Positions 28,086-60,900 of a stretch of DNA of 64,000 nucleotides are shown here, one piece after another. The notes below the pieces were generated by a model that worked only from the letters and a program-made list of their open reading frames with translations, was not told the origin of the DNA and ran no database searches. Each line of letters opens with the position of its first letter. Within the stretch, counting starts at the first letter, position 1. Both the position numbers and the translations under genes were made by a program. Where the stretch lies: assembly GCA_964234715.1 (NCBI GenBank), contig OZ174291.1; one strand, written 5' to 3'. The stretch is from Podarcis melisellensis. Its lineage: Eukaryota.

Positions 28086-28140
<55 letters not shown>

Positions 28141-31100: not shown

Positions 31101-34100
31101 GCTCTTGTGCTTGGATCCTGCTCGGGATTTTTCACACAATGGGCATCTGGTTGGCCACTGTGAGAACAGGATGCTGGAGGAGGTGGACCACTGGCCTCTG
31201 CTTGGGTTCTTATGTAGTGCATAAAAGTTACATATTGTAGATGTCAAAGGCCAACGTTCATCATCACTTTTAATTTGTATTTTAACCCTTTCTATCTTAC
31301 AATACTCAAGGCGGTTTACAAGCTGAAGAAACAAAAAATGTACAACTTATAACAATCTAATGCAATACAAAAACGTGATTATAAAACTTTAAAATAGGCA
31401 ACCTACATCAAAAAAGTAACATTCAACAATCATTAGAAAAGTATTAAATAATAATAACATATAAAAGTTAAACAGAAATCCACTCAACAGTTACAATAAA
31501 TAATTTCTAAACTATAATCAATAAAACAATGGCAAGCCACAGTACATAAAATGATAAGGTTCATCTAGGTTCAACCTCCAAACAACTCTCTAATTGACAG
31601 GGTGCTCCAACAAACCAGTTCTCTCACTCTGCACTCTCTGTTCAAAAGCATTGCAGAGCCTTCGCACTGGTTCATGTAAGGTAAAAAGGTAAAGGACCCC
31701 TGGATGGTTAAGTCCAGCCAAAGGCGACTATGGGGTTGTGGCACTCATCTCGCTTTCAGGCAGAGGGAGCCGGGTGTTTGTCCACAGACAGCTTTCCGGG
31801 TCACGTGGCCAGCATGACTAAACTGCTTCTGGCGCAACGGGACACTGTGACGGAAACCAGAGCACACGGAAACGCCGTTTACCTTCCCGCTACAGCGGTA
31901 CCTATTTATCTACTTGCCCTGGCATGCTTTCAAACTGCTAGGTTGGCAGGAGCAGGGACTGAGCAACGGGAGCTCACCCCGTTGCAAGGATTTGAACCGC
32001 CGACCTTTGGATCAGCGAGCCCAAGAGGCTCAGTGGTTTAGACCTTCTCTCAAGCATGAATAAGCCAGCCACTGCTGACTTCCAGAAAGTGGGTGGGATG
32101 GGACTTTAAAAACAGCAATAACTTGCCAATGGGAAGGAGAGGCTCCCACAGAAAGGGTCATGGATGGAGCAGAAAGAGGAGTCAGGAGGAGGTTAACTGG
32201 TCTTCAACCCACCTGGTGGAATTTCTGGCTTTGCTAGTTTCAGCTTCACCCCCCCCCGCCCCCCGCCCCCCACGCACTCATTACTCACTTCACTTCCGTG
32301 TCAAAAGAAACTGACTCAAACCACTGGCTCTGCAGAATGACCTCATTTCCATCCTCAGCTGCTTTTATCAGGTAATTTAGCAGGCAGGCAGCAATTCCCA
32401 AGCCAAATGCACCCATGCCCCACCCCAGGCCCATGAAAGTGCTCAGTTCTAGGTAAACATTGTTGTTTTAACAGTTTTCCGGGTAGGGGGAGGAATGCAA
32501 CAGAGTTTGCATTTTTCAAATAAATAAAAGAGATTAAGATAGCACAGGAAAAAAATAAAAGCAGCAAAACACATAATGAAAGTCAAATTTTGTGATTTGG
32601 TGCGGAAAGAGTGTTTTACAGGATTTACAGAAGCAGTCTTGGTTTCTGATTTGATCCCAGAATGTCCTCCTTTTCCTTACGACAGCCCTATCTTCACCCG
32701 AGAAATGTTGGGGGGTATGGAGTTATGCGACTCCTGAGCCAACCTTTAGAAGACATCTGAAGGCAGCCCTGTATAGGGACTTTTTTCAATGTTTAATGTT
32801 TTATTATGTTTGAGAGAGAAAGCTGCCCAGAGTGGCTGGGGCAACCCAGTCAGATGGGTGGTGTATAAATAATTAAATTATTACTATTATTATTATGGGA
32901 TAGGACATCCTTATTTTCATCAGAGGAATGTTGCAAGGTTTCTTATGCACCTAATAAATTAAATCCCACTAAACGGCATTAGAAACGTTCTTGGTCTTCC
33001 TTACCCTAAGAAACACACAACACCCTTGGTTTTTAAAATATTTTGCTCTGTTGTACCCAAGTATCCTGCTCAGGATTTCTGTTGGTTTTTTTGTTTTGGT
33101 TTTTTGGCAGGTGTGTGTGTGTAAATTTAAAAATGTAACAAGAATTGGGCTGGCAGAACTGTCTTGCATTTTTTTTATAGGGATGGGCTGTACATCTTTT
33201 AGAAACAGATGCATTGCTCATTCACGAAACATGAGCAAAAGGTCCTTTGGTTCTAAGGCAAGCAAATGGCACACAATGGAGACCCTGTTCTCCAAAACCA
33301 AACGTTCTTAACAGAATAAAGAAGTCAGTGGACAACCAGTGAATCTCTGTTGCCATTTGAAGGGCACACACATTCACAGCCTTGTAACTCTGCCTGGTGC
33401 TTTAGTTCTAAAAGCGGGCGGGGGATGGGGGGGGCTTCTGGCAAAACAAGGTCCAAAAAAAGCAATCTATTCCTTAGATAAAATTATCTCTATACTGCCA
33501 CAAATGCAAACACGCATTTCCAGGGGAGAATCTGCAGGCAGGAGGCTGTAACCCCTTCGCTCATTGAGGGGTCCCAAACAAAGTGGAGAGAAGCTAGACT
33601 GCATCATTTTAAGGAAACCACAGGCTGGTCACTGGGGATTCCAGCAAAGAATGCTGTACAGCACTTTATTGTGACTCAGCACCCCACAAACAGCCACACC
33701 TGAACAGCCCAGGGATTCAGAGGGTGCCAATTTCAGTTTTGAAACTGGTGGTCCCACCACGATTCCAGAAACAAGAAGCTGGGCCATGTTGCTCTAAATC
33801 CACCCATCCCTATCAGAAATGGTTTCCCTTGCTTCAAAAGTCACTGCGGCGTTGCTGTTGGCCCGGGATCTGGGAGGCCAACGTTCAATCCTTACTCAGC
33901 CATGAAGCTCACTGGGTGACCTTTCAGCAGTCGCTATCTCTCAGCCAAACCTGCCAGGAAAAAATGGTTTGTGGGAGGACCCTTTCGGTCCCTGGAGGAA
34001 AGGTGGAATGCCGATGTGATAGGAAGTAAGTTTAAAATCATGCGGATGCATGGCAAGTCAGTTACAGCACATAAACAACACTGTGTCCATCTGAGCTGCA

Positions 34101-37100
34101 AAACTCAGACAACTTTTGCAAGTGATCTGTGGCACTAGTTCTGGACCTTAAGCCCTAGAAGGGGATTTTATGATACAGAAGCCATTTCCCCGCAGCTGGT
34201 TAACTTTGGACCTGGCCACTGTGGAGGAAGAGGCAGAAAAGAGCTACCTATTAACTCACAAGATTTTGAAACAGGAGCCTCTGGAAGCCAGGGCTGTCAC
34301 TCAGTAAATCACAATCCACATCTACAGTTTGCTGCTGCTTTTCTGCAAGGGGAGGGCACCCACAAAGGCCTGTTGCAAACTTGCAAATTCACTGGGACAG
34401 GTGTAAAAAAGCCCAGCTTGGAGAACCAACAACAGATATTAGCACAGAGATTAAATTGAGAGACAACCACAAGGATTATACCACCTAAGTTGAAATCCTA
34501 CAGTCAAATATTTGAATATGGCTTCCAGCTTGCTCCTTTCATCTATTTAGGGTTAAGGGGAAGGGAGGAATTTTGGGGCGAGGCGCAAGTTCAGTAGTAA
34601 GAGAACTTGCTTTGTACCAGATACTGTCAGCAGCATCTCCAGCTAAAAAGGTCTCTGGTAAAAAGTCTGGCAGAGCAACCTTGGAAGAGCTGCCATGTTA
34701 TTAGAGACAGTGACCTGGTCCACAGGTAATGCCAAGCCAAATTATGGCTTTACATGAACAAGCAAGCGTGGGGGATCCCAGAAAAAATGTTTGCAGCTGC
34801 TTTGCTCCTCATCTCATAGTAGGAGAGTAGCCCATTGACAACATTTGAGGCCGGGCTACTCTATTTTAGAGCCTTTGGATCTGCTTAAAATGGGGCAGCC
34901 GAGTCACTGTACCTCCAGAGCCAATGCCTGTACTCATCCTGAGGAAAAAAAACAAACTACGGAACTCCCTGTCACAAAGAAATAGCTGTGGCGAAAGAAC
35001 TGAGGAGTTTCCAAAGAGGGATGAGACATAGAAAACTATGTCAGTAACTGGCTTTAAAGGGATTACATCAACTCATGGGATGGGAGTACATTTTTGGCCT
35101 ACAGCTCCTCTGATGGCTGGGGCTGATGGGAGCTGCAGTTTAAAGCATATGAAGGGCAGCATTCCTCGCCAGGCGCATGGCCACTTGTGATGGAGGGAAG
35201 ATGCCCAGGCAACTACAGGATGGTGCCTAACCTCTCCACCATCTGGAGGTGGATCCTTGGATCTTGTCTGTTTTCACATACTAACACAACACACCCTGTA
35301 GAATTCCATCCATGATATTTTATCTGCACAATCATAATGAATTTCGGGAACCAGAAAAAATATTGAAAAAAATACGACTTTCGAGCCATTTGGTCCCAAA
35401 ATGGCAACTAGACATTCCGTTTTGGAGACTATAACCCTGGTTTAAGGAGCCATTTGGCACCTAGCTTATACAGTATATCTGAGTTTCTAACATTGCTGAA
35501 GGGTGTCAGGTGGATAAAGGCTGACCTAAGACCTTGTCAGCCATCTTGAAGCAGCATTTCCCCCAAAGAGGCAAAGTATAACTATTTTAGAATGGGAAAA
35601 AAATGTCATTGAAACAAAAAAGGTGATCTCTTTGTACTTGGCTAATAGGAAATATAGATCACTTCATTTAGCGTACATTTGTAGCTGTCAGCAGGTGGTC
35701 CCCTGGAAACTGGAAGGTAATCCCTATGGTAGGGATTTACCTCAGGGATGAGGACCAGCATGGAAGCTGGAAGACCCCCAGCAAGACCCCCGTAAGTTCC
35801 CCATTAACCATCTTTGCTGCCCTACAAACCCTTCCTTTACAGAGCTGAATATTTTTAAATTAGCCACGACCAAAACAGTGAAAAAATGAGGCAATCCTGG
35901 TGCCCTGACAGGACTTCTTGGAGTACTCATTTAAGCCTTCGAAACCAGTTTCCCCAGAGTTTAAAACTCCTTCCGACAGCGACTTTATAGAGTCGCATCC
36001 TCATGCTTTCATGGCATTAGAAGCACTGAGAGTCACCGAGGTTTGGGAAAGGGTTTGTTCTGCCTTTCATAGTCAATTAAAGTACTTTTGATTTTGGGTC
36101 GTAGCATGAAACTCCCAGCCTGGGTTTTAAAGCTGAGTCACAGTAAGCTTCACTGCTTTGCTCGATGCCCTGGGCAATAAAAGGCAAGGGGAATGTATAC
36201 AGCTCTGGGGTAGGGCAGATCTGCTTTGGATGCAGATGGTTCTGGGTTCAATTATCATTATACACATTTTTGTGCATATGCGGCACCCCCAGAATGTAAT
36301 CGCGCGCCCCCAGATGCAATCATACGGTACTCAACACCCATTAAAAGCACCAGGAAACTGCACAAACAACTGAATCCAAATGGGAAGGAAGGATCCCTAA
36401 AGGGAGGGGAGGAACATAAACAATGTTAACTCAGCTGGAAGGTCCCTTGGCTACTAAGGACAGATCCAATGGAAGATCAGTCAGCCCTTAAACAAATTTG
36501 AAGCGGAGGGGGTGGGGTGGGGATACACCTGAGGCTATTTAGTTAGGGGGAAAATGGAGACAATAGAAGACCTTTTGTAGAGAGATATTTTTATTCCTTA
36601 AGTGACATCCACACCATACATTTAAAGCACATAGCCCCTGCCCCCCCCCACAAGAATTCCTGGGAACTGTAGTTTTTAAAAGACGCTTCAAATCGCAGCT
36701 CTGTGAGAGGTAAGCTACAGCCCTCAGGATTCTTAAGAGGTAGTCATGTGCTTTACACATACGGTGTGGATGTGCCCGCAGAATTCCCAGAGTGGGTTAA
36801 CAATCAATCCCTCCTCCAAGGGAACACTGGGAACTGTAGCGCTGGGAGGGGAACAACCCTCAGCAAATTTAACAAACTACATTTCTTAGGGTTCTTTGTG
36901 CTTAAAGTGACATGACACTATTCTAGAAATGCATAGTGCAGGGTGCTGTATTGCAGCGATGTCCACAGTCAACCACAATTGACAGGTAGATCTGCTGTAT
37001 GTCCCCAGTAGATCACGCGTTATCGTGGTTGATCGTGGGCAAGTAATGTTCCCACCTCCTGCGAAGTATTAGGAATGCGGAAGTAATGCTTGCTGTAGTG

Positions 37101-40100
37101 CTGTGTGCAATAGTGATTGTTGCTGTTTGTGGTGAACGTATTTTCTCATTCCTCCCCCCCCCCCCAGCTCAACAACTCTGGGCGATCCTCCCTAAGAAAC
37201 ACACGCTCCTTCTCCCTCCAATGACAATGGGTAGATCACTGCCAGTTATTTTATACTGGGAGTAGATCGCAATCTCTTGGGAGTGGGATGTGCCTGCTGT
37301 ACTGGATAGGTGGGGTGGGCTTTCTAAGATAATGGTCCAACCCTGGCAAGACCAGCTCAAATATTTGATCAGTGATACAGCCCACAATGAGTGAGAGAGG
37401 GGGGATCCTTCTCTGTGTAAAAAACAACCAAACAACCCTCCCCAGACTCAATTGCAACAGTGGAGTTTGGTAGATAATTAATCCACAGCGTTAAACAGTC
37501 CAACCCAGGCTATTTATTTATTTAAAATAGATCCAACCTCTTGGACCAGCAAGGAAGAAGAGGAGTAAGTCTGAGGAGAGTCACGACCCAGGAAATGCAA
37601 CTCCTTTATGAGAAAATGCTGCTGTATTTGGGACTTTTTAGTTCAGAGAAAAGACGAGTTAGAAATGAAGTTTATAAAATTATCACAGCATTGAGAAATT
37701 GAAGGAAAGTGTTTTTCTCTCTGTGAACATCCAACGAAGCTGAATGTTGGAAGATTCAGGACGGAATAACGTAATTCTATGAAACTCACTTCCGCAGGAG
37801 GCAGTGATGGCCTCCAACCTGGATGGATCTAGAAGAGGATTGCACAAATTCACAAATTGGTGGAGAGGAGAGGAAAGGGCTATCAATGGCTACTAGACAC
37901 AATGGCCAGGCTCTGCCTCCATGGTTGGAGCCAAGCAATACTTCTGAGTCCCAGTTGCTGGAAACGGCATGACAGGATATTTGCTCTTGTGCTTGGGCCC
38001 TGTTTGTGGGACAAACAGGTCCCACTGAGATATCTGGTTGACCACTGTGGCCTCATCCAGCAGCCTCTTCTTATATTCTGTTCTAAATGCAACTCCACAC
38101 TCTGTCCCCAAACAGAGCCACAAACATAATCCTGGGCACCAATTCTTCTCCATTCTCCAAGATGAAGAAAACCACTAGATATGGCAGAAATTCAACTATA
38201 AGCATAGCAAATGGTGCCCTCCAGATGCTTTATTAGACTACATCACCCACCAAACCCAGCCAGCAACAACTGCATTGGACTACCTCCTAAAGGGAGGGAG
38301 AGGCTGATGGGAATTGTAGTCCAAAAGGGACAAGCTGGCTGGAGGCAGCAGCCCAAAACACCTGGGGGCACCAGACTAGTGCAGGTTGAGTCCCTGTAGT
38401 TTTACATTCATCCTACATAACCCCAGAAAACTGCCGTGCTGCCTGACTAAAGAATGCGTGAGCCATACTGGGGAAACACCTAAAACACAGAAAAAAGACT
38501 CACTTCCTCTGTAAAGGACAGAAGGAATCTATCCCAACATGAGCCTCTGGAAATAATAGCCTAGTCTCCCAAACAGGTTTTCACTCCTTCTGAAAAATCC
38601 TTTGCCCATCACCAGCGGAGAGGGCCACACCTCCAAGGACCGGAAGGGATATTGAGAAGGCAGCAGCAGGAGGAATTGTGACTGAAAAGTGGGGCGGGAT
38701 GGCCTTTGTGAACTGGCTGACCTCATAGGGTTGCCGTAAGGCTTGCTGAGGTCATGTATACCTGGCCATTTTTACCTACCACAGGCACATTGCGTTTCTC
38801 TTTCAATGAATGAATCATCAGACTGCTTTGTTTTATATTTTAACATTCATTGAGGGGGGCTGGACTAGGTGACTCTCAAATGCTACAATTCTGTGATTAT
38901 TTCCTTGTTTATTTCTATGCCGAAGGAGCTCAAGGTGGTGGCATACACAGCTTTTTTCCTCCTCCCCATTTTACCGTCACAACAACCCTGTGAGGTAGGG
39001 TTTGGCTGAGCAGCAGGGAATGGGCCCAAGTCACCCTGTGAGCTTCCTGGTCGAGTGGGGATTAGAACCCTGGTCTTTCAGATCCTGGTCCAAACACTAA
39101 ACACTACACCACACTGGCCCTCGCAGATTAACATTACACCTAATAGTCAGATGTTTGGAGCAAAACAAAAGATGGACGAGCTTCCTTGCCATTGTTTGAG
39201 CTTCCTAGAAGTAAGGGGTGCCAAAGCCTGCTCTAGAGTTTGGGGTCAGGCTGTAGGAGGAGGCTGAGAATGGCATCAGACTCCAGTGACCCATCCCCAC
39301 TGCCAGGCAGAGTATGGTACCCTGAAGTCTTTAAAAAACGTCCTGTAAAAATAATATCAATTACTTGTTTTTCTCTCTGGAAGGTGCTTCAAGGTCTACT
39401 CAGAATCACCAGTGAGCCCAGAATGCAGCTGTTGACACAGACTGGTGGAAAAGACACATTCTGCCAGTCTAAAACAACTCCACTGGCTTCTAGTTCTGGG
39501 CAAGTGTTGAAGTCGTTTGCTGGAGTCCTTGCTCCACATTTTCCTGGCCTTCAGAGCTCAAGAGGTTGGTCATCTGAGAACAGACCTTTTCGCTTCTGGC
39601 AATCATCCTGTTGATGGAATGATACTCCCCAGCCTGTGGCCTACTCTGGAGGCCAGCAAAAGACTCTTTCAGTTGCCCCATCCTTTTGTAGTTTCCCAAT
39701 ACCTTAAATTTTATCACAAGCAACTGTTGGTTGCAGAACCATTTTATTGCTGTTATATTTTTACCTTTCCTATGATGCCGCTTGTGTGTTCCTTTTTAAC
39801 AAAAGATCATTGTAGGATTTCTGATTATCTTAAACTACTCCAAATGTTTTTAATTGATTCCCTGCCTGCAAACCCGATTGAGGATTATATGTTTATTTTA
39901 CTTATTTATTTTTATTTCACAGAATTTGTATACTGCCTGATTGTTTTTTAAAAAAATAAATAAATCCCAAAGCAGGTTACAAAAAGAATCACTCAATAAA
40001 ACTACCGTATTTGTAAAATCAAATAAAACACTCAAAAGGTTAAAATCAGCGATGAACTAAAAACACACCAGCATTCTATGTATCTGGGTAGGAATGTGTA

Positions 40101-42857
40101 AACAAAGATGTTTGCAGCAGGCGCAGGAAGGCCCCTGCCTACATAGGCAGGGAGTTCCAAAGTGTGGATGGTGTTGCAGTAAAAGATCGATTTCTTACAA
40201 ATGCGGTATTATGTAGTACCTGTAAAAATGCCAGTTCTGCAGACTGTAGGAATTGCATGAACATATATGGGGTAAGGCGATCTCACAGCTAAATCAGTCC
40301 CAAGTCGTTAAGGACTTTGTCTACCAATAGCAACACCTTGCAACCAGATCCAAAAAGCAGCATTCAAGAAATAATTCTCAATTTCCACATCTCATCTCTT
40401 CCAGATTTAAGAGAGCCCTCTGCAGTCGCCTTTCCAGCATCTCCCCAACCAGAATATACAGAAACTTTACAAGCACCCCCTTGGTTGCTTCTAAAACTGA
40501 TCTTTGCTTTTGCTCTCTCTCTTTGGTCAATAACTATGCCACACATACACACACACCCGCTGCAAAAGCACTCAGCAGGAGTCTCTGAGCCAACAGATAA
40601 CAGGCATCAGGTCCTCAGAACAGATCACGCCTTTATTAAAAGCTTTTAAAGCCCAGTGCAAGATGGACCTGTTTGGGTAGCTTGAAATGGATAGATCAGG
40701 GCATGGGGCACCCTGCCAGCTCACCGCTCATTAAATCCCAGGGTGTGGTTTAAAAGAACACAGAAACATGATTCTGCCTGCCTTTACACCTCCTCCTGAC
40801 AATCATTTTGTCAAGAAGAAACAGAGTATAAAATTCAGGGCTGTACATACTAAGCAACAGCCAAGACAGACCTGTTGCGTCTGCAATTCCAGCTTGCGAA
40901 GGAAATTAGCAAGAGACAGCTTGGGAAGAAAACAGTACATTTTGGTGCCAACACCACACACCAGGAGACCTAGGCCTAAAGAAGGAGGAATAGCAAAGCA
41001 ATCTACTCCTCCAAACCTCTCCCAAGGCCAACCCTTCGAGAATTAAATATATTTGTGCACATACCAGCACAGGGAAGAACGAAAGGAACAGCAAGTCTAA
41101 CTTTCAAACCATGATTCAACAAGGAAATAAATTCTCTCTTTTTGGAAGCACGCAGGGCAACCACCATTTTAAGGCTTCAGCGACCAAGAGAGAAAAACCG
41201 AAACACCTTTGGAAGTTTACAATTGAAGTTCTACGAACTCACATGGCATCACTATCTAAACACGAACTCAGCTCTGTGTAATCTATCCATCCATTTATCT
41301 GAAGCCAAAAAAGAAATGGGCGATTGTGTGAGTAAATTTAGCTGAATTGATATTAAAAAGGTACAGTTTCTATAGACTCAAAAAGCAAATAACTTTCAGA
41401 ACAAAAGATAAAGGACCACAGAAAGGCAGAAATCCAGGAAGATATACAACAAAGAGTCTAGTGCTTTTTTAAAAAATTGGCCGTTTTATTACAGTGTAGA
41501 GGTTTTTGTGGACTTGGGAGCACTTTATCAGATGCCTAGAGCGTGACCCTCTGTTATTAGGACATAGGTTGAAGGGAAAAAGCAGTCAAAGGTTCACCTA
41601 ATGTTTACTCAGGATTGCTAATATGATGTTGGGATGATCAGCTACTGCTGCCCTAAAGGGTCCTTCTGCCTGCATTTAAGCGCTCATTGAATTGTCACAA
41701 ACTGTATTTTTATATTCCACTGCTATTTAAATCCAACATTTATTTTTCTCCTCTTTACATCTGTACATCTGAGGATCACACACCATGCACTGAGGTGAAC
41801 CGTGGTCCCCAAAAGCTAAGCACCATTATAAAAGGTGTGACTCTAAGGTGCCACAAATCTCTTGGGGCAGACCTACAACATCATACATTTAAAGCACATG
41901 GTATCCCCCAAACAATTCTGGGATCTGTAGTTTCCATCTCCTGGAACCACAGTCTCCAGCACCCTGAACAAACTGCAGTTCCCAGGATCCTTTGCTTGCA
42001 CTGCTACAAACACACACACCTATCCCTCTGGAGAAGATAACGGAAAGAAAGGTCACACTGTGTATTTAACAAAACTGCACAGGCTTCTTTCCAACCTACA
42101 AAAGGGGATTCACACAGATGCTTTAAATACAATTTCCCTGTTTCAGGCTGCAAACTGAGGTGTGCATACTTTGTTGAGAGAGCATCCCTCCCCCCCTCCT
42201 GTTTTAACTTTATGGCTCTTACTCCTGAGTAAACAATCAGAGAAGATGGCTGGCTGGCACAACCTGCAACGAACCATGGTGGGGGGAAATAAGCACTTCT
42301 GGGAAATGTGGGGTGTTGGCTTGAGCCAGAGAGAGCCTGGCAGGAACTCTGCTTGCTTTCCCTTTCCAAGGTCTGCTCGATCTGTTACACAACCCACAGG
42401 CATGGTTTCTTTTGCAGGGGGAGGAAGGGGAGAGAAATAATTAATATTTAAGAAATTTCATCCATACAACCAAAGAGGTCACCAGCAAGGAAATGGCTAG
42501 GAGTGGAGAAAGAGGGAAATGGTCAGTGTAAGGACTAGAAAAACTATTTTTTAAAAAATAAGGAGTTTTGCCAGTTTCCCGGGTCCGATCTCCGCAGCGT
42601 CCCGAGAGCCGCTGCCAGTCAGTGTCGACAATATGGAGCGAGATGGACCCCGAGGTCTGGCTGCAAGTATAAGGCCGCTTCCTCTGGTCCTGAGCCCCAC
42701 CTGGGAGGCTGCCCCAAATCTCCTTGCAGCCCCACTCACCTGGGAAGTTCCTTCCAGCCCCCCCCCCAGCCCCTCCTGCACCCACTTCCTTTGCCTACTC
42801 ACACAGCCCGGCGCAGAAGCAGCCCCACCAAAGCCAGCCCATCGCCGCCACCGCCAT
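14602..42857 (-). CDS. F11R: Junctional adhesion molecule A, 292 aa; exons 42857-42803, 29297-29238, 27198-27091, 25840-25697, 23748-23546, 22365-22263, 19499-19392, 17739-17730, 16400-16349, 14637-14602
   Basis: Ten GT-AG exons splice in frame (879 nt). Product has a signal peptide, a V domain with RVEWKF, a C2 domain (VPPSKP...LTC...DGSPP...WFKD...NSSY), a TM segment ([11 protein letters not shown]...GVWFAYSRG) and the tail [13 protein letters not shown]|[11 protein letters not shown], which is diagnostic of JAM-A. Confidence 0.97.
15294..15921. mobile_element. hAT-type non-autonomous DNA transposon
   Basis: Ends CAGTGTTTCCCAAA...TTTGGAAACCACTG with an AT-rich interior. The TSD is degenerate. 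Confidence 0.55.
15986..16141. mobile_element. hAT MITE
   Basis: TIRs CAGGGGTTGTCAACC / GGTTGACTACCCCTG and 8-bp TSD CTCTAAAC/CTTTAAAC. Confidence 0.8.
16535..17140 (-). mobile_element. CR1 LINE 3' fragment
   Basis: Translates to CR1 RT C-terminus-like '[12 protein letters not shown]...LCSALVRP' and '[17 protein letters not shown]', followed by a typical CR1 3' end. Related pieces at ~30340-30545 (+) and ~56385-56810 (-). Confidence 0.8.
17830..19070. repeat. Cluster of a palindromic MITE-like dispersed repeat
   Basis: Recurring module CATGGCTTCCCCCAAAGAAT.CTGGGA.CTGTAGTTTGTTAAGGGTGCTGAGAGTT and its reverse complement. Also at ~17150-17330, 22640-22880, 25000-25230, 29330-29990, 36600-36940, 43190-43350 and 54850-55000. 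Confidence 0.7.
19683..20143 (-). mobile_element. L2-clade LINE 3' end with (AAT)n tail
   Basis: [31 protein letters not shown]...[15 protein letters not shown]...[10 protein letters not shown] is the L2 RT C-terminus, followed by a microsatellite tail. Confidence 0.88.
20760..21110 (+). mobile_element. Decayed L1-like LINE 3' fragment
   Basis: Broken translation '[14 protein letters not shown]...KLT' resembles the L1 ORF2 C-terminus seen at 24079-24306. Confidence 0.45.
21370..21969 (-). mobile_element. Solo LTR (600 bp) in F11R intron 6
   Basis: Termini TGTTACGG...CCGTAACA, perfect 4-bp TSD ACAT (21366-21369 and 21970-21973), and minus-strand AATAAA at 21500-21495. Confidence 0.85.
24020..24495 (+). 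mobile_element. L1-like LINE 3' fragment
   Basis: [15 protein letters not shown]...[21 protein letters not shown]...[12 protein letters not shown]. Same family at 52640-53000 (-) and 58108-58473 (-). Confidence 0.7.
24598..24765 (+). mobile_element. tRNA-derived SINE (second family)
   Basis: Head AGTTCAGTGGTAGAGCAT...TTCAATCCCCAGCA and body CCAGTCAGTGTAGACAATACTGAG. Copies at ~28440-28650, 58030-58610 and 58622-58800. Confidence 0.65.
26578..26620. repeat. (AAT)n microsatellite
   Basis: Pure AAT run. Another lies at ~28087-28137. Confidence 0.95.
29425..29768 (+). mobile_element. L2-clade LINE 3' end with (TTA)n tail, inserted in a MITE
   Basis: Highly similar to the reverse complement of 19727-20050. 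Flanked by the two halves of the palindromic MITE family. Confidence 0.85.
31679..32043 (-). mobile_element. Sauria SINE
   Basis: GGTAAAAAGGTAAAGG tail (ACCTTT repeats on the minus strand), core CCGGGTCACGTGGCCAGCATGACT and CGGTACCTATTTATCTACTTGC, and a tRNA-like head at the right end. Confidence 0.85.
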
Positions 42858-46661: not shown

Positions 46662-49600
46662 ATGAGCCCTGGAAAGAAGGGCAGAGGCCGGCCCTGGCCC
46701 AGTGCTCTACCTGGCTGGTGGATTCTCCTTGGCTGCTTAACAGGTACCAGGCAACAGGATGGTGCAAAACAAGGGAGGTGTGTTTTTTCTTTCCAGGGGT
46801 TCAGGGGAAAGAGAAACAGCCTCACTGGGGGAACAAATCAAACTGGGCAGGCAGACCAAGTGGGGAATATTTTTGGGGTCCCCGTCCATTCTGCTTGGGT
46901 CAAGTACAAACCATTTAAAGCACTTTTAACAGGCACAGAGGGTGCTAAGAACTATAGGTCTGAAAGGTCAGACCCCCTTAACATACTCTGGTCCCCAGGA
47001 ATCTTAGGGGGAAGCCATGACAGCATGTTGTACTATTTCTCCTCCCCCCCACCCCCGGGTCTGTATTTTAATAGATTATTTTTTTTTACACTGTTGGAAT
47101 TATAGTTCCATTACTTTTCAGCTATAAGCTTTTATGTTTTTAGCTATGGGTGTTTAACGGTGTGGGTTCCCCACCCATGAGTTGCCTTGAGTCCTGGAGA
47201 AAAGGCAGGGCATAATTAAATTAATAAATAAATGCTTAAATGCAATATTGTGGAATAAGAGTGCTTAAAATAAATGGGGTGGTGGATATCACCCCAGTCT
47301 GCCTGTGTGCTTGCAGGTTTTACAGTGTTGGGGCTGGGGGCTGGCTTACAGCCAAGGTAGTCCTGATAGCATTTTCAAAAAATTTAAAAGGTGGCAGATT
47401 TGGTTCAGGGTCACAGTACTGAGAAAATTCAGGGTTAAGCCTTGACCCTATGGAAATCTTGCTTCTTCATCCATACCAATTAGCAGCTTGGGAGGGTGGG
47501 TACAGTCCCTATTGGGAAAACAGTAGAACAATAATGGTTTGTTAAAAAGGCCCATCTCTGCCACTGTGGCCCTAATCCAACCCACACCCCTTATTTTTAC
47601 CAACAGCATGGTCATGGAGAAACAACTGGTTGTTGTGACTGGTGGGGTTTTTCCTCACACACACTCAGAATCCATTTGTTGAAAGCTGTGAAGGTGCCAC
47701 ACACAGCTTAGAGCCTGTGTGGTGTAGTGGTTAAGAGCTGTGGACTCGTAATCTGGGGAACCTGGTTCGCTTCTCCGCTCCTCCACATGCAGCTGCTGGG
47801 TGACCTTGGACTACTCACACTTCTCTGAAGTCTCTCAGCCCCACTCACCTCACAGAGTTTTTGTTGTGGGGGAGGAAGGGAAAGGAGAATGTTAGCCGCT
47901 TTGAGACTCCTTTGGGTAGTGATAAAGCGGGATATCAAATCCAAACTACTCGTCCTCCTCCTCTTCTTCTTTTTCTGGGCCACCACAGAGAAGGCTCTCT
48001 CTGCTTGAGCCACCCCCACCCTCTGAGCATATGAGGGTGGTAGAACTACCAAGAGGGCCCCCTCTGCTGATTTCAGCACCCAGGAGGGTCTGTGGCGTTA
48101 GGTGGATAGGAAGTTGCACACGAGGAACTGGTATCTACTGCTATCTTTGCAAACAGGTTGCTCAGAGATGGGGGGGTAATAGAAGCTGCCTCAGCACCCA
48201 AAGGCTCTCACCGCTGTCTCTCAGGCACGTCCCATGACATCACCGGGTCCTTCTCAATTATCACCAATTACCTTGAGGAGATGTCACTGTTTCAGGCAGC
48301 TCCAATTAATTATCTAGCCTGAGAATTCAACCCGGGGACAGTTCCCATTCACTGCAATGCCTTCGCACTTTGCCTGGGGGAAGGAGAGGCAAAAAGAGAG
48401 AGGTCCCTTGGGAGTGGGACACACAGGCCCATTGTTCAGGAAAAAAGCTACCGCCCCTACCTCCCATCCAGCCGCTCAGTGCTCAGGCCTTTGGAGAAAG
48501 GAAGTGAAAAGGTCAGGAACAGAGCCTCCCGTGGCTCATTCCAACCCAGACTCCCCTTGGCACCATCTCTAGAGTGGGTCTTCAAGAGAAAGGAATGAGC
48601 TGTATCTGCCCTCTCCCCAAAAAAGCATTCTATTGCCCCCAAGGAGCTCCCCACTGTCATTTTTTAAAAATCTACTTTCATTTCCCCCCCACTGGCTTCG
48701 CCTGTGGGTCTTCCACTGTGATGCTACGATGCCAAAAGTTTGGGTTGTGTTTTTTTTGTCCCTAGTATGTCCAACAACATCTGGAAGACCAGAGGTGTCC
48801 CACTGCTGTCCCTTTATAACATCCAGTTATAGGCCTTGTCCCTAATAAGTCTCTTTTCTTGCAGGAACTAATGACTACTATATTGAGCCACGAGAAAAAA
48901 GGAGGGGAAAAGGCAGGGGAATAATAATCTGTAAATGTACAAAGTTGAGAGTGGTGTGAATTCCAGATCTTTAAACACAATATTTGCCAGCCAGATGTTC
49001 TTCCGATGTTGTTAGAACCGATGTTGTTAGAACCAGAATGACCATTAGCCCCGACCGGCATGCCCCAAACCCAAAGGGCACCAGGTTGGCGAAGGCTGCT
49101 TAATAGCTTTAAAAGAGCCTTGCTGAATCGTAAGAACGTAAGATGAAGGTGCTGGATCCAACCAACCACCCTTCCAGGCCAGCATCCTGTCCTTGCAGTG
49201 GGAAACTTTCAAGGAGGACCCGAGCATAGTCTCTTCATCATGGCTAGTAGCTATCGATGGCCTTCTCTGTTGGTTTGTCCCATCCTCTTTTAAAGCCATC
49301 TGAGTCAGTGACCATTGCTGCCTTCTTGTTCCAGGGAGTTCCACAGTTTAACAATGTGCTGCGTGTAGAAGGACTTTCTTTTGTTCGTCCGGAATCTTCC
49401 AATACTGTATTCAGCTTCATTGGATGTCCATGAGTTCAATTGTTAGGAGAGAGGGATAAATGTCAGATCAAGCCTTGTGTGGTCTAGCCTTCTATCCAAG
49501 ACATTCAAAAAGCCAGCAAGGCCCAGGGGCAGTGGAAAGGTCATTTCTGAGCATCCCTGACCCTCCTTCTCTCCCTCTCTCAGTCTCAGGGGCTGTGAAG

Positions 49601-52600
49601 GTCTCTGTGGTGGCTGATAGCATCCAGGTTGTGCAGGGAGGGAGTGCCCTCTTGCCGTGCTCTTTCCGCACCACAGCACCCTTGAACCACCTCAATATCA
49701 TATGGACCATCATTCCATCTGCGGACCCCAACCGCCCTCAGCAGGTGAGATCAAGCTGGGGGGAGGGTCTTTCCCCAACTCACCCCTTTTGGAATTTGCA
49801 GTGCTTCTGCTCTGAGGTTTCAGATGCCTGTGATATTTTTCTAACATACATCTTTGAGGGCAAAGACTTGAATCTCGCCATGATGGCCTGAGGCTGATGG
49901 TGGCCCTTGGAATATTAGAACTATATTTCTCATCGTGCCAAAAGGAGAGGCAGCGTCATCTAGTGGTTACAGCAGCACGTGCCAACCTGAAGCTGTCCAG
50001 ATGCTTGGGACCACAAGTTATTCCTAGCCAGTATTTTGCAGTATTTATGCATTCCTCCAAAGTAGGAGATACTCTGTCTCACAAACACATCTCATCTCCA
50101 GATAGCAGGATCAGTATCTCCAAGATGCTCTTCCAGCCTCTGGATTTCTCTCCCTGTTTCTGTCCCAAAACTGCCTTTTCCAACCTGAGACATTCAAATC
50201 ACTCTCCAGAGAAAAGGCCAACTGTTTCCTAACCATTAGGTCCCCTTTGATGAAAGATCTGCCAATCAGCCTTAGTAGGGTTGCCAGACCTGACCTGAAA
50301 TCTCCAGGTTTGCCTAGCCCCCTTCAGGTGGGACGGCTTGAATCTCCAGGTGGGCAACAGTGCCTTAAAAAAAAAACTTTTTAAATTATTCGGAAGACTA
50401 TGCATGCAGCTTGCAAGCTTCAGCTTGGCAGGAGCCAGCTGAAAATTACTGCATGGGCTCTCCAGGGTCTTCCCTCCTTGCCACTCCCAATTAACCTCCG
50501 TCTCCAGGGTTCAGTGGTGGGAGGGAGCGCAGAATCACCAGGTGCCACCCTAGCTCTCAGGTTTGGGCCATCAAATCTCAGGGTCTGGGATGCTCCTGAC
50601 CTAGCAATCCATTGACAAGCAACATCCTGAACAAAAGTCCTCTAACAGGTGCCCAAGAAAGCCAAGGCCCAGCATAACCAGAGAGTCTAGACTTTCACTC
50701 ACCTGCCCACCTTGAAACTGCCTCAATGTACTGTCCTCTTAACTTTACTCTCTTCTCTCGCTCTGAGCATCCTTGGCCTGTCATCTCACTTGACCTTCCT
50801 CTGCTCTGCAGATCCTTGCCTACGAGCAAGGCGAGGTGGTGGAGAGCATCTCCCACTACACAGGCCGGGTGGGCTTTGCTTTCTCGCCCACCAAGAGCGC
50901 CACCATCATCCTGAACGACACACGGAGCTCGGACAGCGGCAGGTACCAGTGCAGTGTGATGAACCCGCCAGATGCTGCCACGCCCAACATTGGAGTCATC
51001 CAGCTCACTGTGTTTGGTATGGCTGCTCCCACATCCTTACTCTCAGCTCCCTCACAAGCATGAGGCTAGGCTTGTCTCTTTCCATAATCAACAACAACAA
51101 CAACAACAACAACTGTATTATTTATACCCCGCCCATCTGGCTGGGTTTCCCCAGCCACTCTGGGCGCCTTACAGCACATTAAAAATGGTAAAACATCAGA
51201 CATTAAAATTTCCCCAATACAGGCCTGCCTTCAGGTGTCTTCTAAAAGTCTGATAGTTGTTTATTTCCTTGTCATCAGATAGGAAGGTGTTCCACAGGGT
51301 GGGCACCACTACTGAGAAGGCCCTCTGGCTGGTTCCCTGTAACTTCGCTTCTCACAGTGAGGGAACCGCCAGAAGGCCCTCAGATCTGGACCTCAGTATC
51401 CAATGATGGTGTTGGAGATTCTCCTTCAGGTATACTGGCCAAGGCACTTTAGGGCTTTCAAAATTAAAGAAGTAACAGGATAAAAATTTTTCCCAACCAA
51501 CCAAATTCAAAGAAAATTCTTATGGGACACCTGAGCTGTAAACCGTTAATACCAATTTATTATTTAATTTACTTGTCATTGCTAGAATTTGCTCAACTCC
51601 TCACTCCCAAATCACAGGTTGGTTAAGAAAAATAGGCAGATACTACAGCTCCTGATCAAGCCAGCATTTTCCTAGAAGTTATCAAAACGAACAAATCAAT
51701 TGAAAAATGGTAATGGCTGGTTCATGTTTAGATAACGAATTTCAAAACAAAAGCAAGCGATATGTGTGCCATCTGTAATATTACTTTGGGTTTTTATTCT
51801 GGTTAGCATATCAAACATTTGGTTTCATTACCTTTTATTTCTAAATATTGCTATGCTTCTACATCATCTTCATTTGGAACAACTTCATTATTGTCATCTT
51901 AAAAATATCTGCGTATTTAAAAAGCGACCATAAATATCCTCTCTCAAGAAATGGGGCTTGTGGGTCTGAACTGGACTTCCTCTTCTTCTGTGTCCCTTCC
52001 CCAGTGCCTCCTTCTCGTCCCAGGTGCTCCAGCGAGGGCGACGGCGAGGAGGGTGGAAGCCTCCAGTTCTCATGCACTGTGGATGAAGGGATGCCCACCC
52101 CCACATTCACCTGGGAGAAGATCCCACCTGATGCACAACCTCTGATGATGAGCTATGAAGGTACAGTAACAAAAACCGAGAGAGGCAGCGTTCAGCTTGA
52201 GACAGCTGCTGGTCCCAGTACGAATAGGGCAAGCTGCAAACTAGATGGGACGCCTTTTATTTGACTGACTGTTTGTGAGGGGGTGTTATATATTGTTGCA
52301 TTTACCCTAATGGCCAGGCTGCAAAACTCTCCAGTGCGTACCCAGGGTTCAGTTTCCTTGGAAAGAAGAGAGATGGTGGTATCTTTAAGCTGCATGGTTT
52401 TCTTCACACATATATGCAAACCCCATCGTAGGAGGGAGGGACTCGCAGCATCAACACCCCAACAAATCTTGCTTCCCCATTAGGTTTCCAGGGGAGCCCC
52501 CAAGGACAGCACAGAGCACATATTTCTGAGTCTCCAGCTTCCAGCATCAGCCCCAAACTCTTGCACACAGCTCTCTCAAACGCAGACCCTTTTTCTTGGT

Positions 52601-53523
52601 TTATTGTTCCCCATTCTTTTCTCTCTCTCTCTCTCTCTTGTTGTTTTTCAGATTAAAATTTTACAATCACATATCCAACATAAAAACAAGATTCCAAAGT
52701 ATCTCCTGGGCTTCCCTCCTCCCCTTTGTGGGTTCTGTTGTTAATAATTTCCTCCTGCATCTTTTATAATAATCCAAATCTTTTACCTCTCCATTGTGTC
52801 CAAAATTCACCATTAAACTACAATATTTTAGCTGTTTGCAATGGTTTATAAGATAAAATATAACTTTCCCCCATTCTTTATTAAAATTTTGGTCTCCCCG
52901 ATTTCTGCTTCTTCTGGTCATTTTAGCCATTTCAGCATAATCCATCAAGTTAATCTGTCATTCTTCTCTGGTTGAGACTTCTTTCCATCTCTGGGCCAAT
53001 AACAATCAGGAAGACCAAAATTTTAATAAGGAATGGGGAAGATATTGCTCTCCATTCTAGGATGATGTGGCATCCAGCCGGGTGAGTTGGGAAAAGTTGG
53101 TAAATGGCAGCATTTAACTGGCTAGCCTAAGCAAATATCCTTAAAAAAAACGGGATCTGGTATTGGTTGGTCAGCAGCTATTAGCTTCCAAGCATAACTG
53201 GATCTTGGATCACAGGCTTAGAAGGGACCAAGGGAGTTATCCAAACAGACTACACCCCCCCCACAAACCTATAACAATATTTTTGTTGTTTTGATTATTA
53301 TTAGATCTCATAATTCTATTAAATATCAATTTAGAGCAGTACCACACAGGGATTTTTTTATGGGAGCTCCCATACACCCCCACCACTGACCATGCCAGCT
53401 GGGGGGTGATGGGAATTGTAGTCTATAAAGCATCAGGAGGGCAGCAAGCTAAGGAAGCCTGATTTGGAAGACGAAATGTCCAAAAGTGCTGAATCCAATG
53501 CTACAGATCCTCCCTTGTTCTTA

Positions 53524-53567
<44 letters not shown>

Positions 53568-55599
53568 CCCACTGTCTCATTATTCTGGGAAGATGAATGC
53601 ATCTGTTGCCATTTTTAGACATCCATCCATCTCAGCCAAGCTTTGAAGAATTCTCCTCAGGGGATGCAGTGGCAGGTCAGCTCCTGTTCACATTCATGTA
53701 ATACAGATGAGGGTCCTATGCTGATTGTGATTGGGGGTTGGGGGGGGAGAGGAGCTGCTTCCCATTGCTAATTTCCCCTTTCTCTTCCGGCTCCGGCCCT
53801 CTCGTTGGGCAGATGGCAAACGTGCCCTCCTGACCTTGCAAAACCTGACGACGCAGGCCTCGGGCCTTTACCGCTGCACAGCCTCCAACATGCTGGGCTC
53901 CACCTTCTGTGTCCTGGAGCTGCGTGTTCATGTCAGTGAGTATCACCAGTGTCTGGAAAGGATCTAAGCTGGTGCCCTCAGCTGCAGATCCAGAAGATCC
54001 ATATGGCATGGCTTCATTGTACCAAGGTGTCCATCTCTGAATGTGCCCAGGCTTTCCCGCCTGATGTACTTGCCTATATTAACTATTGTTGGTGTTGTTA
54101 TTATTACAATTTCTTACCTGCCCTTCAACCCGGGGTGGGTGACAACAATTTAAACACAATTCTTAAAAGCCATTTGGAATAGGTCCTAAAAATATGCATC
54201 CCAAGAGTTAGTTCTGCAGAGGTAAGTGGAGTTAAGATTGCAGACAGAGATATGCATCTTCAGGCTCCCAGTTCAAGCTCTGCTGCTGCTATCCAAAGGA
54301 CCCCATCTTTTTCCTGCAATAAGGTGAGGAAGTTCCACTCTCCCAGAGTTTAGGACCATTCCCAGTTACCTCTTCTGTACAACTGTTAACTCTGTCCTCC
54401 TTGAGATCTAGAAACCCTACTGGTTATTGCTAGGGGCAAGACAGCCGTCTTCAGCCAGCCTTCCCCAACATGGTTCCCCGTTAAATGCTCTTGACTACAA
54501 TTCCCATCAGCCAACAGGGATAACGGGACTGATGGGCGTTGTGAGTGGCCATTCTCTCATCCCGTTTCCTTTGCTGTGTTCCAGCCTCACATGGCACCAC
54601 CTCCCTCGCAGTGGGGATCAGCCTCATGCTCACGATGGGCCTGGTGCTCATGACGCTCTTTGCACTGGTGTTGTGGCTGCACCATCAGAGCGTGGAGAAG
54701 CAGAGAGAGCTGGAACAGGACAATGCACGGAAAAAGCACAGGTAAATCGATGCAAGGGCCAATGTGGAATGGCATGCTTCTTGCACTAGGATCACCGCAG
54801 ACCTCTGAATTGCAGCCAGGAAATACCTACCATTTGGGGTATTATACACAAACCCATACATTTAGAGCACTACAATACCACTTTAAACCATCAAGGCTCC
54901 CCCCCCAAAAAAATTCTGGGAGCTATAGTTTGGGTGCTGAGTGTTGTTAGGAGACACCCCTCCCATAACTGCATTTCTCAGAATTCCCCTCTGGGAATTG
55001 TAGCTTTTCAAACCCCCTCCACACCTTTCAAGTGCCTCTCCCCCAGAACTTCAGGCCTGCACCACTCGCCTCCAAGCTGATAATTCTCTCCGCTCCTTTT
55101 GAAGTGCCTCTCCCTGCATCTCGTCCTGCTCATTTTCTAAGCAGTCCTCTAGGTTCCAAGAACTATGGAATAGCCATTGCTCTTGCCATTCTTCAGACCA
55201 CCTGAATAAAGCTTGTGAAGCAGTTTTGGGGGAACCCCCTAGACTGAGCCCTAGTGTTTCAAATGTGGCTAACCTTGGCTGTTGCTCCACAGAACCGACA
55301 GCTTCACGTTGGGGCGGCTGATAGTTGTCAAGAGTCCTTCTGGAGCCAACCCTGCGGCCAGCCCCATCACCAAGCCCCTCTGGATCTTCACCAGCTCCAC
55401 TCCCAACACCACCTATGCCCATCGTGAATGGAGGCCTGAGCAGGGGAACCTCAGCCAGGCCACACTGCCAGGTGGCCCACGACAGCCCTGGGGGAGATGG
55501 AGGAGCAACAGCCTCTCTGAGGAGCAGGGGTCCTCATCCGGAAGCGAGGAAGGGAAACAGCCAGGTCCTTTCCCAAAACCCAGAGGATTCCTGGTCTAG
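46662..55599 (+). CDS. CTX-family V-C2 immunoglobulin adhesion protein (IGSF11/ESAM/CXADR/VSIG-like), 396 aa; exons 46662-46743, 49584-49744, 50812-51016, 52005-52160, 53813-53935, 54585-54741, 55293-55599
   Basis: Seven GT-AG exons splice in frame (1191 nt). Product has a signal peptide (WWILLGCLT), a V domain (LLPCSF...LNIIW...YTGRVGF...ATIILNDTRSSDSGRYQC.V.NPPD), a C2 domain with four Cys (PRC, FSC, YRC, TFC), a TM segment (LAVGISLMLTMGLVLMTLFALVLWL) and a Ser/Pro-rich tail ending GFLV*. Confidence 0.9.
47711..47975 (+). mobile_element. tRNA-derived SINE with CT-rich tail
   Basis: Head GTGTGGTGTAGTGGTTAAGAGC...GGTTCGCTTCTCCGCTCC and end GATAAAGCGGGATATCAAATCCAAACT followed by (CCT/CTT)n. 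Confidence 0.7.
51087..51460 (-). mobile_element. L2-clade LINE 3' end with (AAC)n tail
   Basis: Same family as 19683-20143. Confidence 0.8.
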
Positions 55600-57933: not shown

Positions 57934-60900
57934 TCAGTGGCTGTCCTTGATGATGACCTCCACGCCGTGCTGCCGCAGCTGCGCTCGCAAGATCAGGTTC
58001 TTGTTTTTCAGGTCTTCAACCTGCAGAGGGAGAAAGGAAGCAGGGAAGGGCCTCAGCTCTGTGGCAGAGCGCCTGCCTTGCATGCAGAGGTTCCCAGGTT
58101 CAATTTGAAATCATTTTTAAAAAAAGCATTTTTATTTGGTTTTACATATACAAAGTTATAAAAATCCAAATATATGTCCATATACAGAGATTCCTCCGAA
58201 TTTCGGGACTTCCCCCCACCCTCTCCATGGGGTCCCATTTTGAATATTTAAAACTGCATATTCTTCCATATCAATCCATATTATCCATGGTAATTGTTAT
58301 ACTGCAAGTGAAATCAAAATCCTGCCAATGTTTCTATCTGCTTACAGTGGTCTCCTAAGTAGCTTATAAATTTTTCCCATTCTTTTATAGAGTTTTTGTC
58401 CTCTTAGTTTCTGAGTTTTCCCGTCAGTTTTGCCATTACGGCATAGTCCATCAGCTTGGTTTGCCATTCCTCTCCAGGTTCAATTTGCAGGCAGGGCTGG
58501 GAATATCCTCTGCCTCAAACGCCTGAGAGCTGCTGTTGCCAATCAGTGTAGGCAAAACTGAGCTAGATGGACCAATGATTTGCCTCAGTATATGGCAGCT
58601 TCCTATGTCCCTAGATGCTAAGGGAATGGCTGCAGCTCAGTGGAGAGCATCTGCTCTGCATTGAGAAGGACCCAAGTTCAATGCCCAGCAGCATCTCCAG
58701 GGAGAGACGCCTGCCAGAAATCGCTGCCAGTCAGTGTAGACAATACTGAGCTAGAAAGACCAGTGGTTTCTCTCCGCACAAGGCAAATTCCTATATTCCT
58801 ACACATACATAAAGGTAAAGAGACCCCTGACCATTAGGTCCAGTCGTGGCCGACTCTGGGGTTACGGTGCTCATCTCGCTTTATTGGCCGAGGGAGCCGG
58901 TGTACAGCTTCCGGGTCATGTGGCCAGCATGACTAAGCCGCTTCTGGTGAACCAGAGCAGCACACGGAAACGCCGTTTACCTTCCCACCGGAGCAGTACC
59001 TATTTATCTACTTGCACTTTGATGTGTTTTCGAACTGCTAGGTTGGCAGGAGCAGGGACTGAGCAATGGGAGCTCACCCCATCGCGGGGATTTGAACTGC
59101 CAACCTTCAGATCGGCAAGTCCTAGGCTCTGTGGTTTAACCCACAGCACCACCCGCGTCCATACATACATATATATATACATATATACATACATACATAC
59201 TGCTGCAAGCAATAGGCAGACTCTACTGGAAGAGCCCCTGCCATGCCACTTCCATCCCCTTAAAGAGCTCCCCCACTACTTCTCCCCTTCTGGTAGAAAA
59301 ACATCCACACCCTGCCCTCCTTCTGGCCAGCCTTACCTGCTGCCGCAAGACCTCGTTGTCCATCTGTAGCTGGTCCAAGCCCTGCAGCTCCTCGGAGAGA
59401 CGAATGTTGCTCTGCCGCAGCTCCTGGATGTAGTCACAAGCTTTGGAGAGGATCCCTCCTTTGCTCTGCAGTGAAAGCGAGTGATTGAGCTGGGGGCCCA
59501 GGGGGGAGACTCCAGGGTAGTACCAGCCCCTGACACTTCAGGTGGGAACACGCGGCAGTTCATGGCTGCCTTCTCTCTTCAACCCCCTCCCCCTTCCACC
59601 CGTTCCAGTGTGCCATTTCCCTGGAGACTGGAAAACTGCCTCCTCCTGCCTAGAAATGTTAAAAGCAGGTGCTGCAACAAGTTAAAGGAGGTGTGTGAGA
59701 GGAAAGACTCCCCTGACAGTTTCCAGGGAACCAAACAATTCCTAGACCAGGTGAAGATGGAAGCACGGGACTCCTCCTGATGGGGGTGACAAGACAGATC
59801 CTGGGATCGTTTTTTTTAAAGATTCTATTCAAAAGCTCTTATGTTTTTAAAAGCTTTGAGTTGTGAACAATAGAAAAGCAACAGAATTAACAGAAAAAAT
59901 ACAACCCAAAACAAAGAAAGCAGCAACAGCAGCAAAGCTTGTAAAAAGGAATTTTAAAAGGCATTAAAGGGATTGAAACACACAAAACAGGGTCCAATCT
60001 TCTGGGGTCAGGGAAGGTCTGGGCAAACAGATCTGCTTTTACAAGGCATCCGAAGCAACTGATGGCTGCTGCTTCACCCAACAGCTCCTGTTTTGCACCT
60101 ATATGTTTTTTAATACATGCACATGCAAACAGACTGCTTGATATGGACACCACCATGGGTTACTAAATGTCAAAATAAACGATTTCCTTGATGTGCAGAG
60201 TAGAGTTCTGGATACAAGATTTTGAAGTTTGGTAGGTAGAATGTTTGAGAGGGTGCTGAGCTCAGGTCAGCTCCCTCAGCCAGAGCCCCTTCTGGCCTTT
60301 TTGATGCCTCAGTGATGTGCCCACCATTTTAAGATTACCCAGAAAGCCCTGGTGCAGTCAACATGGCATCATGCCAGGGCACTGTGGAAATGAGAATGGC
60401 AAGCAGCTTCACAGATGCAGCAGCTGACACTGAGTGGGGCTGAAGTCAAGGGCTGGCACCCTGCTGGGGCCTTTCTGTAACCGGGCCCAGACTGTCTCTG
60501 CTCCTACGGAAGGCCAGTTCAAGCCCCCTTACCTGCCCAGACTTGGTGTTCTCCATGGAACAGTCAGGGATAATCTTAGACAGCTGCACAATCCAGTTGT
60601 TGATCTTGTCCCTGCGCCTGCGCTCCACTGGAAGAGATGGAAATATAAACATCATAAACATAGCTTGCTGGATGAGGCCAAGGGTCCACCTAAGAATTCA
60701 AACAAAACAATAATTGAGCATGAGGTGGAAGAACGACTGGCATACTAGAATGGTGGGATGTGGACCAATCTCCTTCAAGATGCTGAACAGATTGCAGTGC
60801 TGCAGTACGCCCTGCAATAAGATCCTCCTACAGAGGGTTGCAAGGCAGTCAGCACTCCAAGCAACCTGTCCTCATGGAACAGTGTGGCTAAATTCAAGGA

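Follow-up and report, generated by a model that had tools for sequence, protein, structure and literature searches.

The F11R gene, which encodes the junctional adhesion protein JAM-A, and the USF1 gene lie close together in a 64,000-nucleotide stretch of the genome of the lizard Podarcis melisellensis (contig OZ174291.1 of assembly GCA_964234715.1; this whole stretch is referred to below as the window), and between them, on the + strand at positions 46662-55599, sits a third gene encoding an immunoglobulin (Ig) superfamily membrane protein. What is this gene, and why is it there? We conclude, with a probability of roughly 80%, that it is the lizard orthologue of a vertebrate gene, here called IGSF11L, that constitutes a fifth member of the CAR group, has IGSF11 as its nearest paralogue and, by inference from its relatives, encodes a junctional adhesion protein. 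An earlier reading of the locus made from the sequence alone (the sequence-only reading) had treated the gene as undescribed; this did not hold, as databases already contain predictions of it from more than 50 species under the name 'IGSF11-like'. The gene is best filed as the fifth member of the CAR group, so far uncharacterised. A search of the literature found no published study describing it.

Structure and constraint of the lizard gene

IGSF11L is made up of seven exons that form a single frame of 396 codons, with AG/GT at all junctions and intron phases of 1, 0, 1, 1, 1 and 2. The exons are as follows:

46662..46743, + strand: exon 1, ATG and signal peptide (82 nt, that is 27 codons plus 1 nt), with a phase 1 GT donor at 46744
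49584..49744, + strand: exon 2, N-terminal half of the V domain (Pfam V-set positions 3-38), with a phase 0 donor
50812..51016, + strand: exon 3, C-terminal half of the V domain including the second V cysteine (Pfam V-set positions 59-108), phase 1
52005..52160, + strand: exon 4, N-terminal half of the C2 domain with the first extra and the first canonical cysteine (Pfam Ig_3 positions 2-37), phase 1
53813..53935, + strand: exon 5, C-terminal half of the C2 domain with the second canonical and the second extra cysteine (Pfam I-set positions 54-90), phase 1
54585..54741, + strand: exon 6, transmembrane helix and juxtamembrane segment, phase 2
55293..55599, + strand: exon 7, 101-codon disordered cytoplasmic tail ending in GFLV, with the stop codon TAG at 55597-55599

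The same seven exons are used by 396-residue Podarcis predictions named 'immunoglobulin superfamily member 11-like' (tblastn against the window). The window exons were searched singly, and full-length comparisons were made with database proteins as stand-ins, mainly those of Podarcis lilfordi (P0176) and P. muralis (P0331). Exon 1 aligned with residues 1-27 of the Podarcis models and had blastn matches in the P. lilfordi, Lacerta and Zootoca loci, whilst exon 2 gave an exact 53-residue match from residue 29 of the P. muralis and P. raffonei models. Further exact matches were obtained for exon 4 (at residue 151 of the P. lilfordi and P. muralis models), exon 6 (at residue 244 of the P. lilfordi model) and exon 7 (101 residues, at residue 296 of the P. 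lilfordi and P. muralis models), and the I-set match of exon 5 scored 24.4 bits, over the Pfam cut-off. The sequence-only reading had described an intact gene with signal peptide, V, C2, transmembrane and tail portions, and each of these elements was found in its place. At the start of exon 2 (49582-49589) there is a second in-frame AG acceptor 6 nt downstream, at 49588-49589; the database models splice at the upstream AG.

IGSF11L in lacertids is under strong purifying selection. Counting codons exon by exon against three lacertid loci (P. lilfordi, Lacerta and Zootoca) gave 25-46 synonymous and 4-13 non-synonymous differences with zero stop codons, corresponding to ratios of non-synonymous to synonymous substitution rates (dN/dS) of 0.048, 0.073 and 0.080; dS between the window and P. 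lilfordi is 0.094, and the introns are 85-89% identical in these comparisons. The window sequence is identical to none of the three Podarcis species with database records. Geckos, turtles, ostrich, coelacanth and ray-finned fishes all retain the juxtamembrane motif SYNEIR, the place of which is taken in lacertids by NARKKHR (54700-54741, the end of exon 6).

Relationship to IGSF11 and the CAR group

The CAR group consists of CAR, CLMP, BT-IgSF and ESAM, which have in common a V and a C2 domain, a C-terminal PDZ motif, homophilic aggregation and junctional localisation (PMC10056934). Evidence that the lizard gene is nearest to BT-IgSF (IGSF11, also known as VSIG3) comes from several searches. 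An exhaustive HMMER search with exon 3 identified a 399-residue Gekko kuhli protein at 91% identity, together with relatives in turtle, frog, coelacanth and ostrich; these are labelled 'immunoglobulin superfamily member 11-like' by NCBI, and one coelacanth IGSF11L entry is named Zgc:165604 in UniProt, a name that makes zgc:165604 a candidate orthologue in zebrafish. Beyond the IGSF11L clade, this search gave IGSF11 as the nearest proteins, and IGSF11L shares 40% identity with turtle IGSF11 (201 bits, BLASTP). True IGSF11 itself came up in a profile search, with members from bichir, gar, bowfin, many teleosts, turtle, gharial and birds, and three species were seen to possess both genes: Chrysemys (IGSF11 P0264, IGSF11L P0182), Engraulis (P0223 and P0054) and Amia (P0229 and P0338).

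A maximum-likelihood tree was built from 38 IGSF11 and IGSF11L proteins with no outgroup. In this tree IGSF11 forms a clade with 100/100 support, as does teleost IGSF11L, and coelacanth and tetrapod IGSF11L lie with a partial shark sequence on one side of a 91/83 branch. When the root is put on the long IGSF11 branch, teleosts come off before coelacanth and coelacanth before tetrapods; this order is that of the species tree, pointing to one duplication before the bony vertebrates diverged. The shark fragment (Heptranchias) scores nearer IGSF11L than IGSF11, so that the duplication, which came before the divergence of bony vertebrates, probably also predates the split from sharks; because the shark branch is very long, this older date can be no more than probable. 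The branches of IGSF11L exceed those of IGSF11 several times in length. Weak matches from the exon searches were considered as outgroups and rejected, being CEACAM-like or repetitive Ig proteins, and a profile search aimed at ESAM and CXADR returned overwhelmingly IGSF11. The comparison supports IGSF11L as an old paralogue of IGSF11 and not a relocated IGSF11. An ancient paralogue was what the sequence-only reading had proposed, with a phylogeny as the check, and the outcome favours it: the gene is separate from the 100/100 IGSF11 clade and coexists with IGSF11 in turtle, anchovy and bowfin, which contradicts one-to-one orthology.

The domain structure places IGSF11L in the wider CTX family, to which it had been assigned from the outset. 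Each Ig domain is encoded by two exons, the V domain being split in phase 0 (exons 2 and 3) and the C2 domain in phase 1 (exons 4 and 5), and two exons per Ig domain is the CTX-type gene structure. The extra pair of C2 cysteines pointed out in the sequence-only reading is also present by sequence: the four C2 cysteines C157, C173, C223 and C234, all of them encoded in window exons 4 and 5, are invariant in 39 IGSF11L and IGSF11 proteins, and the same is true of all six structural cysteines. The AlphaFold2 model has two Ig domains at a predicted local distance difference test score (pLDDT) of about 90, a helix at 245-292 and a disordered tail with pLDDT below 50. Its best fold match is the mouse CAR ectodomain (3jz7, E 4e-18, 30% identity), and the CAR ectodomain is also the best match by sequence among solved structures (88.9 bits over residues 37-242, phmmer). 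Only CAR among solved proteins aligns collinearly with all four Ig exons, the other single-exon PDB matches being mostly generic Ig. A language-model search of the ESM Atlas gave generic Ig clusters only, a VSIG2 cluster being ranked third. The V and C2 domains, the two exons per Ig domain, the extra cysteine pair, the PDZ-type end and the top match to CAR all speak for CTX-family membership.

The window protein ends in RGFLV. Among about 50 models from squamates, turtles, archosaurs, amphibians and coelacanth (62 models were tabulated in all), 39 end in FLV and four in YLV, and most of the remainder are truncated or alternative; SFV is found at the end of six ray-finned fish models. The coelacanth protein ends in AGFLV, and the motif that precedes this, rich in methionine, proline and valine, aligns with the end of IGSF11, AGSLV. 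On the strength of this alignment the FLV end is best read as the family tail with a change from serine to an aromatic residue at position -2, a change that would convert a PDZ ligand of class I into one of class II, the type found in JAM-A. The likeness to the neighbouring JAM-A is real but looks convergent or coincidental, and not due to descent. The sequence-only reading had remarked on an FLV end common to this gene and F11R; the shared ending stands (RGFLV here, SSFLV in JAM-A), though it does not look like a copy taken from JAM-A, given the alignment of coelacanth AGFLV with AGSLV. Competition between the two proteins for PDZ scaffolds, which that reading also raised, is at this stage a conjecture. 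The tail of ESAM likewise resembles that of IGSF11. One coelacanth UniProt isoform stops at the same point as the short tail of the fish proteins, hinting at an old alternative last exon; no alternative short-tail exon ending in SFV was found in the window. The ostrich protein (P0192, locus L002) ends in GVRV rather than GFLV and has a long branch in the tree and an unusual composition.

A full-length gecko query gave 48 matches, in squamates, turtles, alligator, ostrich, a salamander, many frogs, coelacanth and a catfish, and the range of IGSF11L as a whole takes in squamates, turtles, alligator, ostrich, amphibians, coelacanth, ray-finned fishes and probably a shark. The named relatives that the exhaustive exon search yielded included no mammal, and neither did the 48 gecko-query matches or the 57 turtle-query matches. 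Since frog and coelacanth members were found at 47-62% identity, a mammalian orthologue of like divergence should have surfaced, and the absence from mammals suggested earlier is borne out among annotated proteins by the exon search and both full-length searches. The only archosaur members to appear were those of ostrich and an alligator fragment. JAM-A has been reported missing from the chicken assembly (PMC3399880), so the absence of IGSF11L from other birds may be an assembly gap.

Comparison with the best-known relatives brings out both what is shared and what is particular to IGSF11L. Like IGSF11, it has a signal peptide, V and C2 domains, a transmembrane segment and a long tail, with 40% identity in the ectodomain, four identical C2 cysteines and, in coelacanth, a tail end that aligns with that of IGSF11. 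Unlike IGSF11, it forms its own clade, occupies another locus (adjoining USF1), has no mammalian representative that we could find and evolves several times faster; fish IGSF11 ends in AGSLV, a class I PDZ ligand, whereas IGSF11L ends in aromatic-Leu-Val, of class II. CXADR, the gene for CAR, offers the best structural match over the whole ectodomain and also encodes a PDZ-type end, but identity is 30%, IGSF11 is nearer to CAR (136 bits) than IGSF11L is (89 bits), and the search of the window found no alternative last exon of the kind seen in CAR. With JAM-A there is likeness in the V, C2 and transmembrane architecture, in the C-terminal FLV and in the adjacent, divergent arrangement of the genes; identity is only 20%, however, JAM-A ranks ninth as a fold match and it is absent from the best 60 sequence matches. 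JAM genes encode the distal domain in three exons and have short tails made up of several exons (PMC3399880), in contrast to the two exons per domain and the single 101-codon tail exon of IGSF11L. A tandem copy of F11R, and so a member of the JAM family, was considered and rejected on account of the different exon structure, the 20% identity and the fold rank of nine.

Alternative explanations and wider meaning

By analogy with its relatives, IGSF11L would be a type I membrane glycoprotein whose V domain may mediate adhesion between cells, either homophilically or with a related Ig partner, and whose disordered tail could anchor the protein to junctional scaffolds by way of its putative class II PDZ ligand (aromatic-Leu-Val). 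Other accounts of the gene have to be weighed against this. Were it simply the one-to-one orthologue of mammalian IGSF11, relocated in reptiles, IGSF11 would be expected as the best-matching named family, as it is, and some records (Varanus, Chelonia and Xenopus laevis) do carry the plain name 'IGSF11'; yet true IGSF11 forms a 100/100 clade without the window gene, Chrysemys, Engraulis and Amia have both, identity to turtle IGSF11 is just 40% and the end is FLV, not SLV, all of which brings the likelihood of a relocated IGSF11 close to nil. We consider it very unlikely that the gene is a fast-diverged and displaced orthologue of some other mammalian CTX gene (ESAM, CXADR, CLMP, VSIG1, VSIG2, VSIG8 or GPA33). 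These genes are absent from the tree, one Pogona record is named VSIG2-like, the VSIG2 cluster came third in the language-model search, and GPA33 and VSIG8 lie on the same human chromosome arm as F11R. Against such an origin, all named nearest relatives outside the clade are IGSF11, the match to CAR (89 bits by phmmer, 30% identity) falls well short of that to IGSF11 (201 bits by BLASTP, 40%), the coelacanth tail can be aligned with the tail motif of IGSF11 and no mammalian CTX gene is known to lie between the small rhodanese gene found at this locus in some species (see below) and USF1.

It is hardly credible that the gene is a decaying or unexpressed copy, its open frame kept by chance or through recent origin. 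The dN/dS values of 0.05-0.08 in three lacertid comparisons, in which the introns differ by 11-15%, argue against decay, as do intact frames in more than 50 species across more than 400 million years with the six cysteines and the C-terminal motif kept, even though no transcripts and no canonical poly(A) hexamer past the stop codon were found, SYNEIR has been replaced in lacertids and the clade evolves much faster than IGSF11. An expressed IGSF11L might, finally, act mainly as an immune or signalling ligand and not in junctional adhesion, as IGSF11/VSIG3 is reported to do for VISTA (PMC8027081), and its ectodomain does evolve at several times the pace of the IGSF11 ectodomain, a behaviour often seen in receptor-ligand pairs. 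We regard this as unlikely in view of the conserved PDZ-type end and the long scaffold-type tail, which are typical of the junctional CAR group (PMC10056934).

Several observations nevertheless weigh against an ancient CAR-group gene that is shared across vertebrates, lost from mammals and functional in the lizard. In two teleosts (Engraulis and Silurus) IGSF11L lies between PACS and pecanex genes and not beside F11R, and the ray-finned fish proteins are short (about 300 residues) with a tail ending in SFV; the teleost members could represent a paralogue of their own. The shark member is known from an incomplete sequence, and its branch is very long. The root of the tree and the exclusion of orthology to ESAM, CXADR, CLMP, the VSIG genes and GPA33 rest on similarity ranking, and the absence from mammals is one of annotated proteins only. 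No transcript was found among short public Logan/ENA fragments: those recovered read into introns and are therefore genomic. Nor is there an AATAAA or ATTAAA on the + strand at 55600-57936, the 2.3 kb between the IGSF11L stop codon and that of USF1.

A fifth member of the CAR group has certain consequences. The group is treated in the literature as one of four proteins (PMC10056934), a count that reflects the four found in mammals. With a fifth member that is conserved from coelacanth (and probably shark) to lizards, strongly constrained and seemingly absent from mammals, studies of junctions and of gap-junction coupling in zebrafish, Xenopus and reptiles may be missing a player, and mammalian results may not carry over directly to these animals. 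The names 'IGSF11-like' and 'IGSF11' mask a distinct gene that deserves a symbol of its own. The F11R region also gains its own CAR-group gene, and this is relevant to an old proposal by which JAM and CTX genes were already neighbours on one chromosome when the vertebrate genome duplications took place. A scenario that joins these threads, and that we put forward as a doubtful one, is that IGSF11L represents the fourth CAR-group copy, hitherto missing, from the two early-vertebrate genome duplications, that the linkage between JAM and CAR-group genes is older still, that its PDZ ligand switched to the JAM-A class and that mammals lost this partner of JAM-A. The linked ancestors would have given rise to JAM2 with CXADR, JAM3 with ESAM, IGSF11 alone and F11R with IGSF11L, and of these only the F11R-IGSF11L pair would have stayed within a few kilobases. 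Were this so, JAM-A and IGSF11L would share scaffolds at the same junctions in non-mammals.

The F11R-USF1 interval

The order of genes in the window is F11R (- strand), IGSF11L (+ strand) and USF1 (- strand), the two neighbours being placed as follows:

14602..42857, - strand: F11R (JAM-A), with its ATG at about 42857 in a CpG-rich patch and a last exon (14602-14670) that ends in SSFLV
57937..60697, - strand: 3' part of USF1, with the basic helix-loop-helix, leucine-zipper and last coding exons, tail to tail with IGSF11L

The identity of F11R is clear from its C2 exon, which matches solved JAM-A with E 8e-24. The same order of F11R, IGSF11L and USF1 was called in P. lilfordi, Lacerta agilis, Zootoca vivipara and ostrich, window F11R exon 1 was matched in the lacertid loci and the window USF1 exons were also found downstream of IGSF11L in five other species. 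A helix-loop-helix gene of 310-319 residues was called downstream of IGSF11L in lacertids, ostrich and turtle; synteny had been suggested as a check on the sequence-only reading, and the adjacency to USF1 is indeed kept in these animals.

The upstream side is more variable. In turtle a rhodanese gene of 150 residues lies directly upstream of IGSF11L, with USF1 downstream, and in Xenopus laevis a small rhodanese gene is likewise found directly upstream; both are probably TSTD1, and the human order is F11R-TSTD1-USF1. No rhodanese gene is seen in the F11R-IGSF11L interval of lacertids and ostrich, and a tblastx search of the window with the turtle (L004:1-3641) and frog (L005:1-7687) upstream regions detected no rhodanese exon, the matches being repeats only. 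In tetrapods, then, IGSF11L sits in the F11R/TSTD1-USF1 interval, and the older order is likely to have been F11R, TSTD1, IGSF11L and USF1.

The sequence-only reading had made much of the head-to-head arrangement with F11R. The two genes are divergent, with 3805 bp between the F11R ATG (about 42857) and that of IGSF11L (46662), but their direct contact is specific to certain lineages and not ancestral, because the rhodanese gene intervenes in turtle and frog. There is also no CpG island common to the two 5' ends: the observed/expected CpG ratio is 0.65 in the patch at F11R exon 1 and 0.18 at the start of IGSF11L. A bidirectional promoter serving both genes was considered and is unlikely, with the ATGs 3.8 kb apart and CpG-rich sequence at the F11R end only.

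F11R itself spans about 28 kb, of which the first intron takes up about 15 kb, and its introns contain several transposon-derived open frames (for example at 19815-20159). At the other end of the locus the stop codons of IGSF11L and USF1 are 2.3 kb apart, a distance that must hold the 3' untranslated regions of both genes. On the 5' side of USF1, a GC-rich minisatellite occupies 62699-64000 and runs past the end of the window; it consists of 21.9 copies of a 60-bp unit with 85% matches and lies in a CpG-rich stretch (GC 0.78, observed/expected 0.88).

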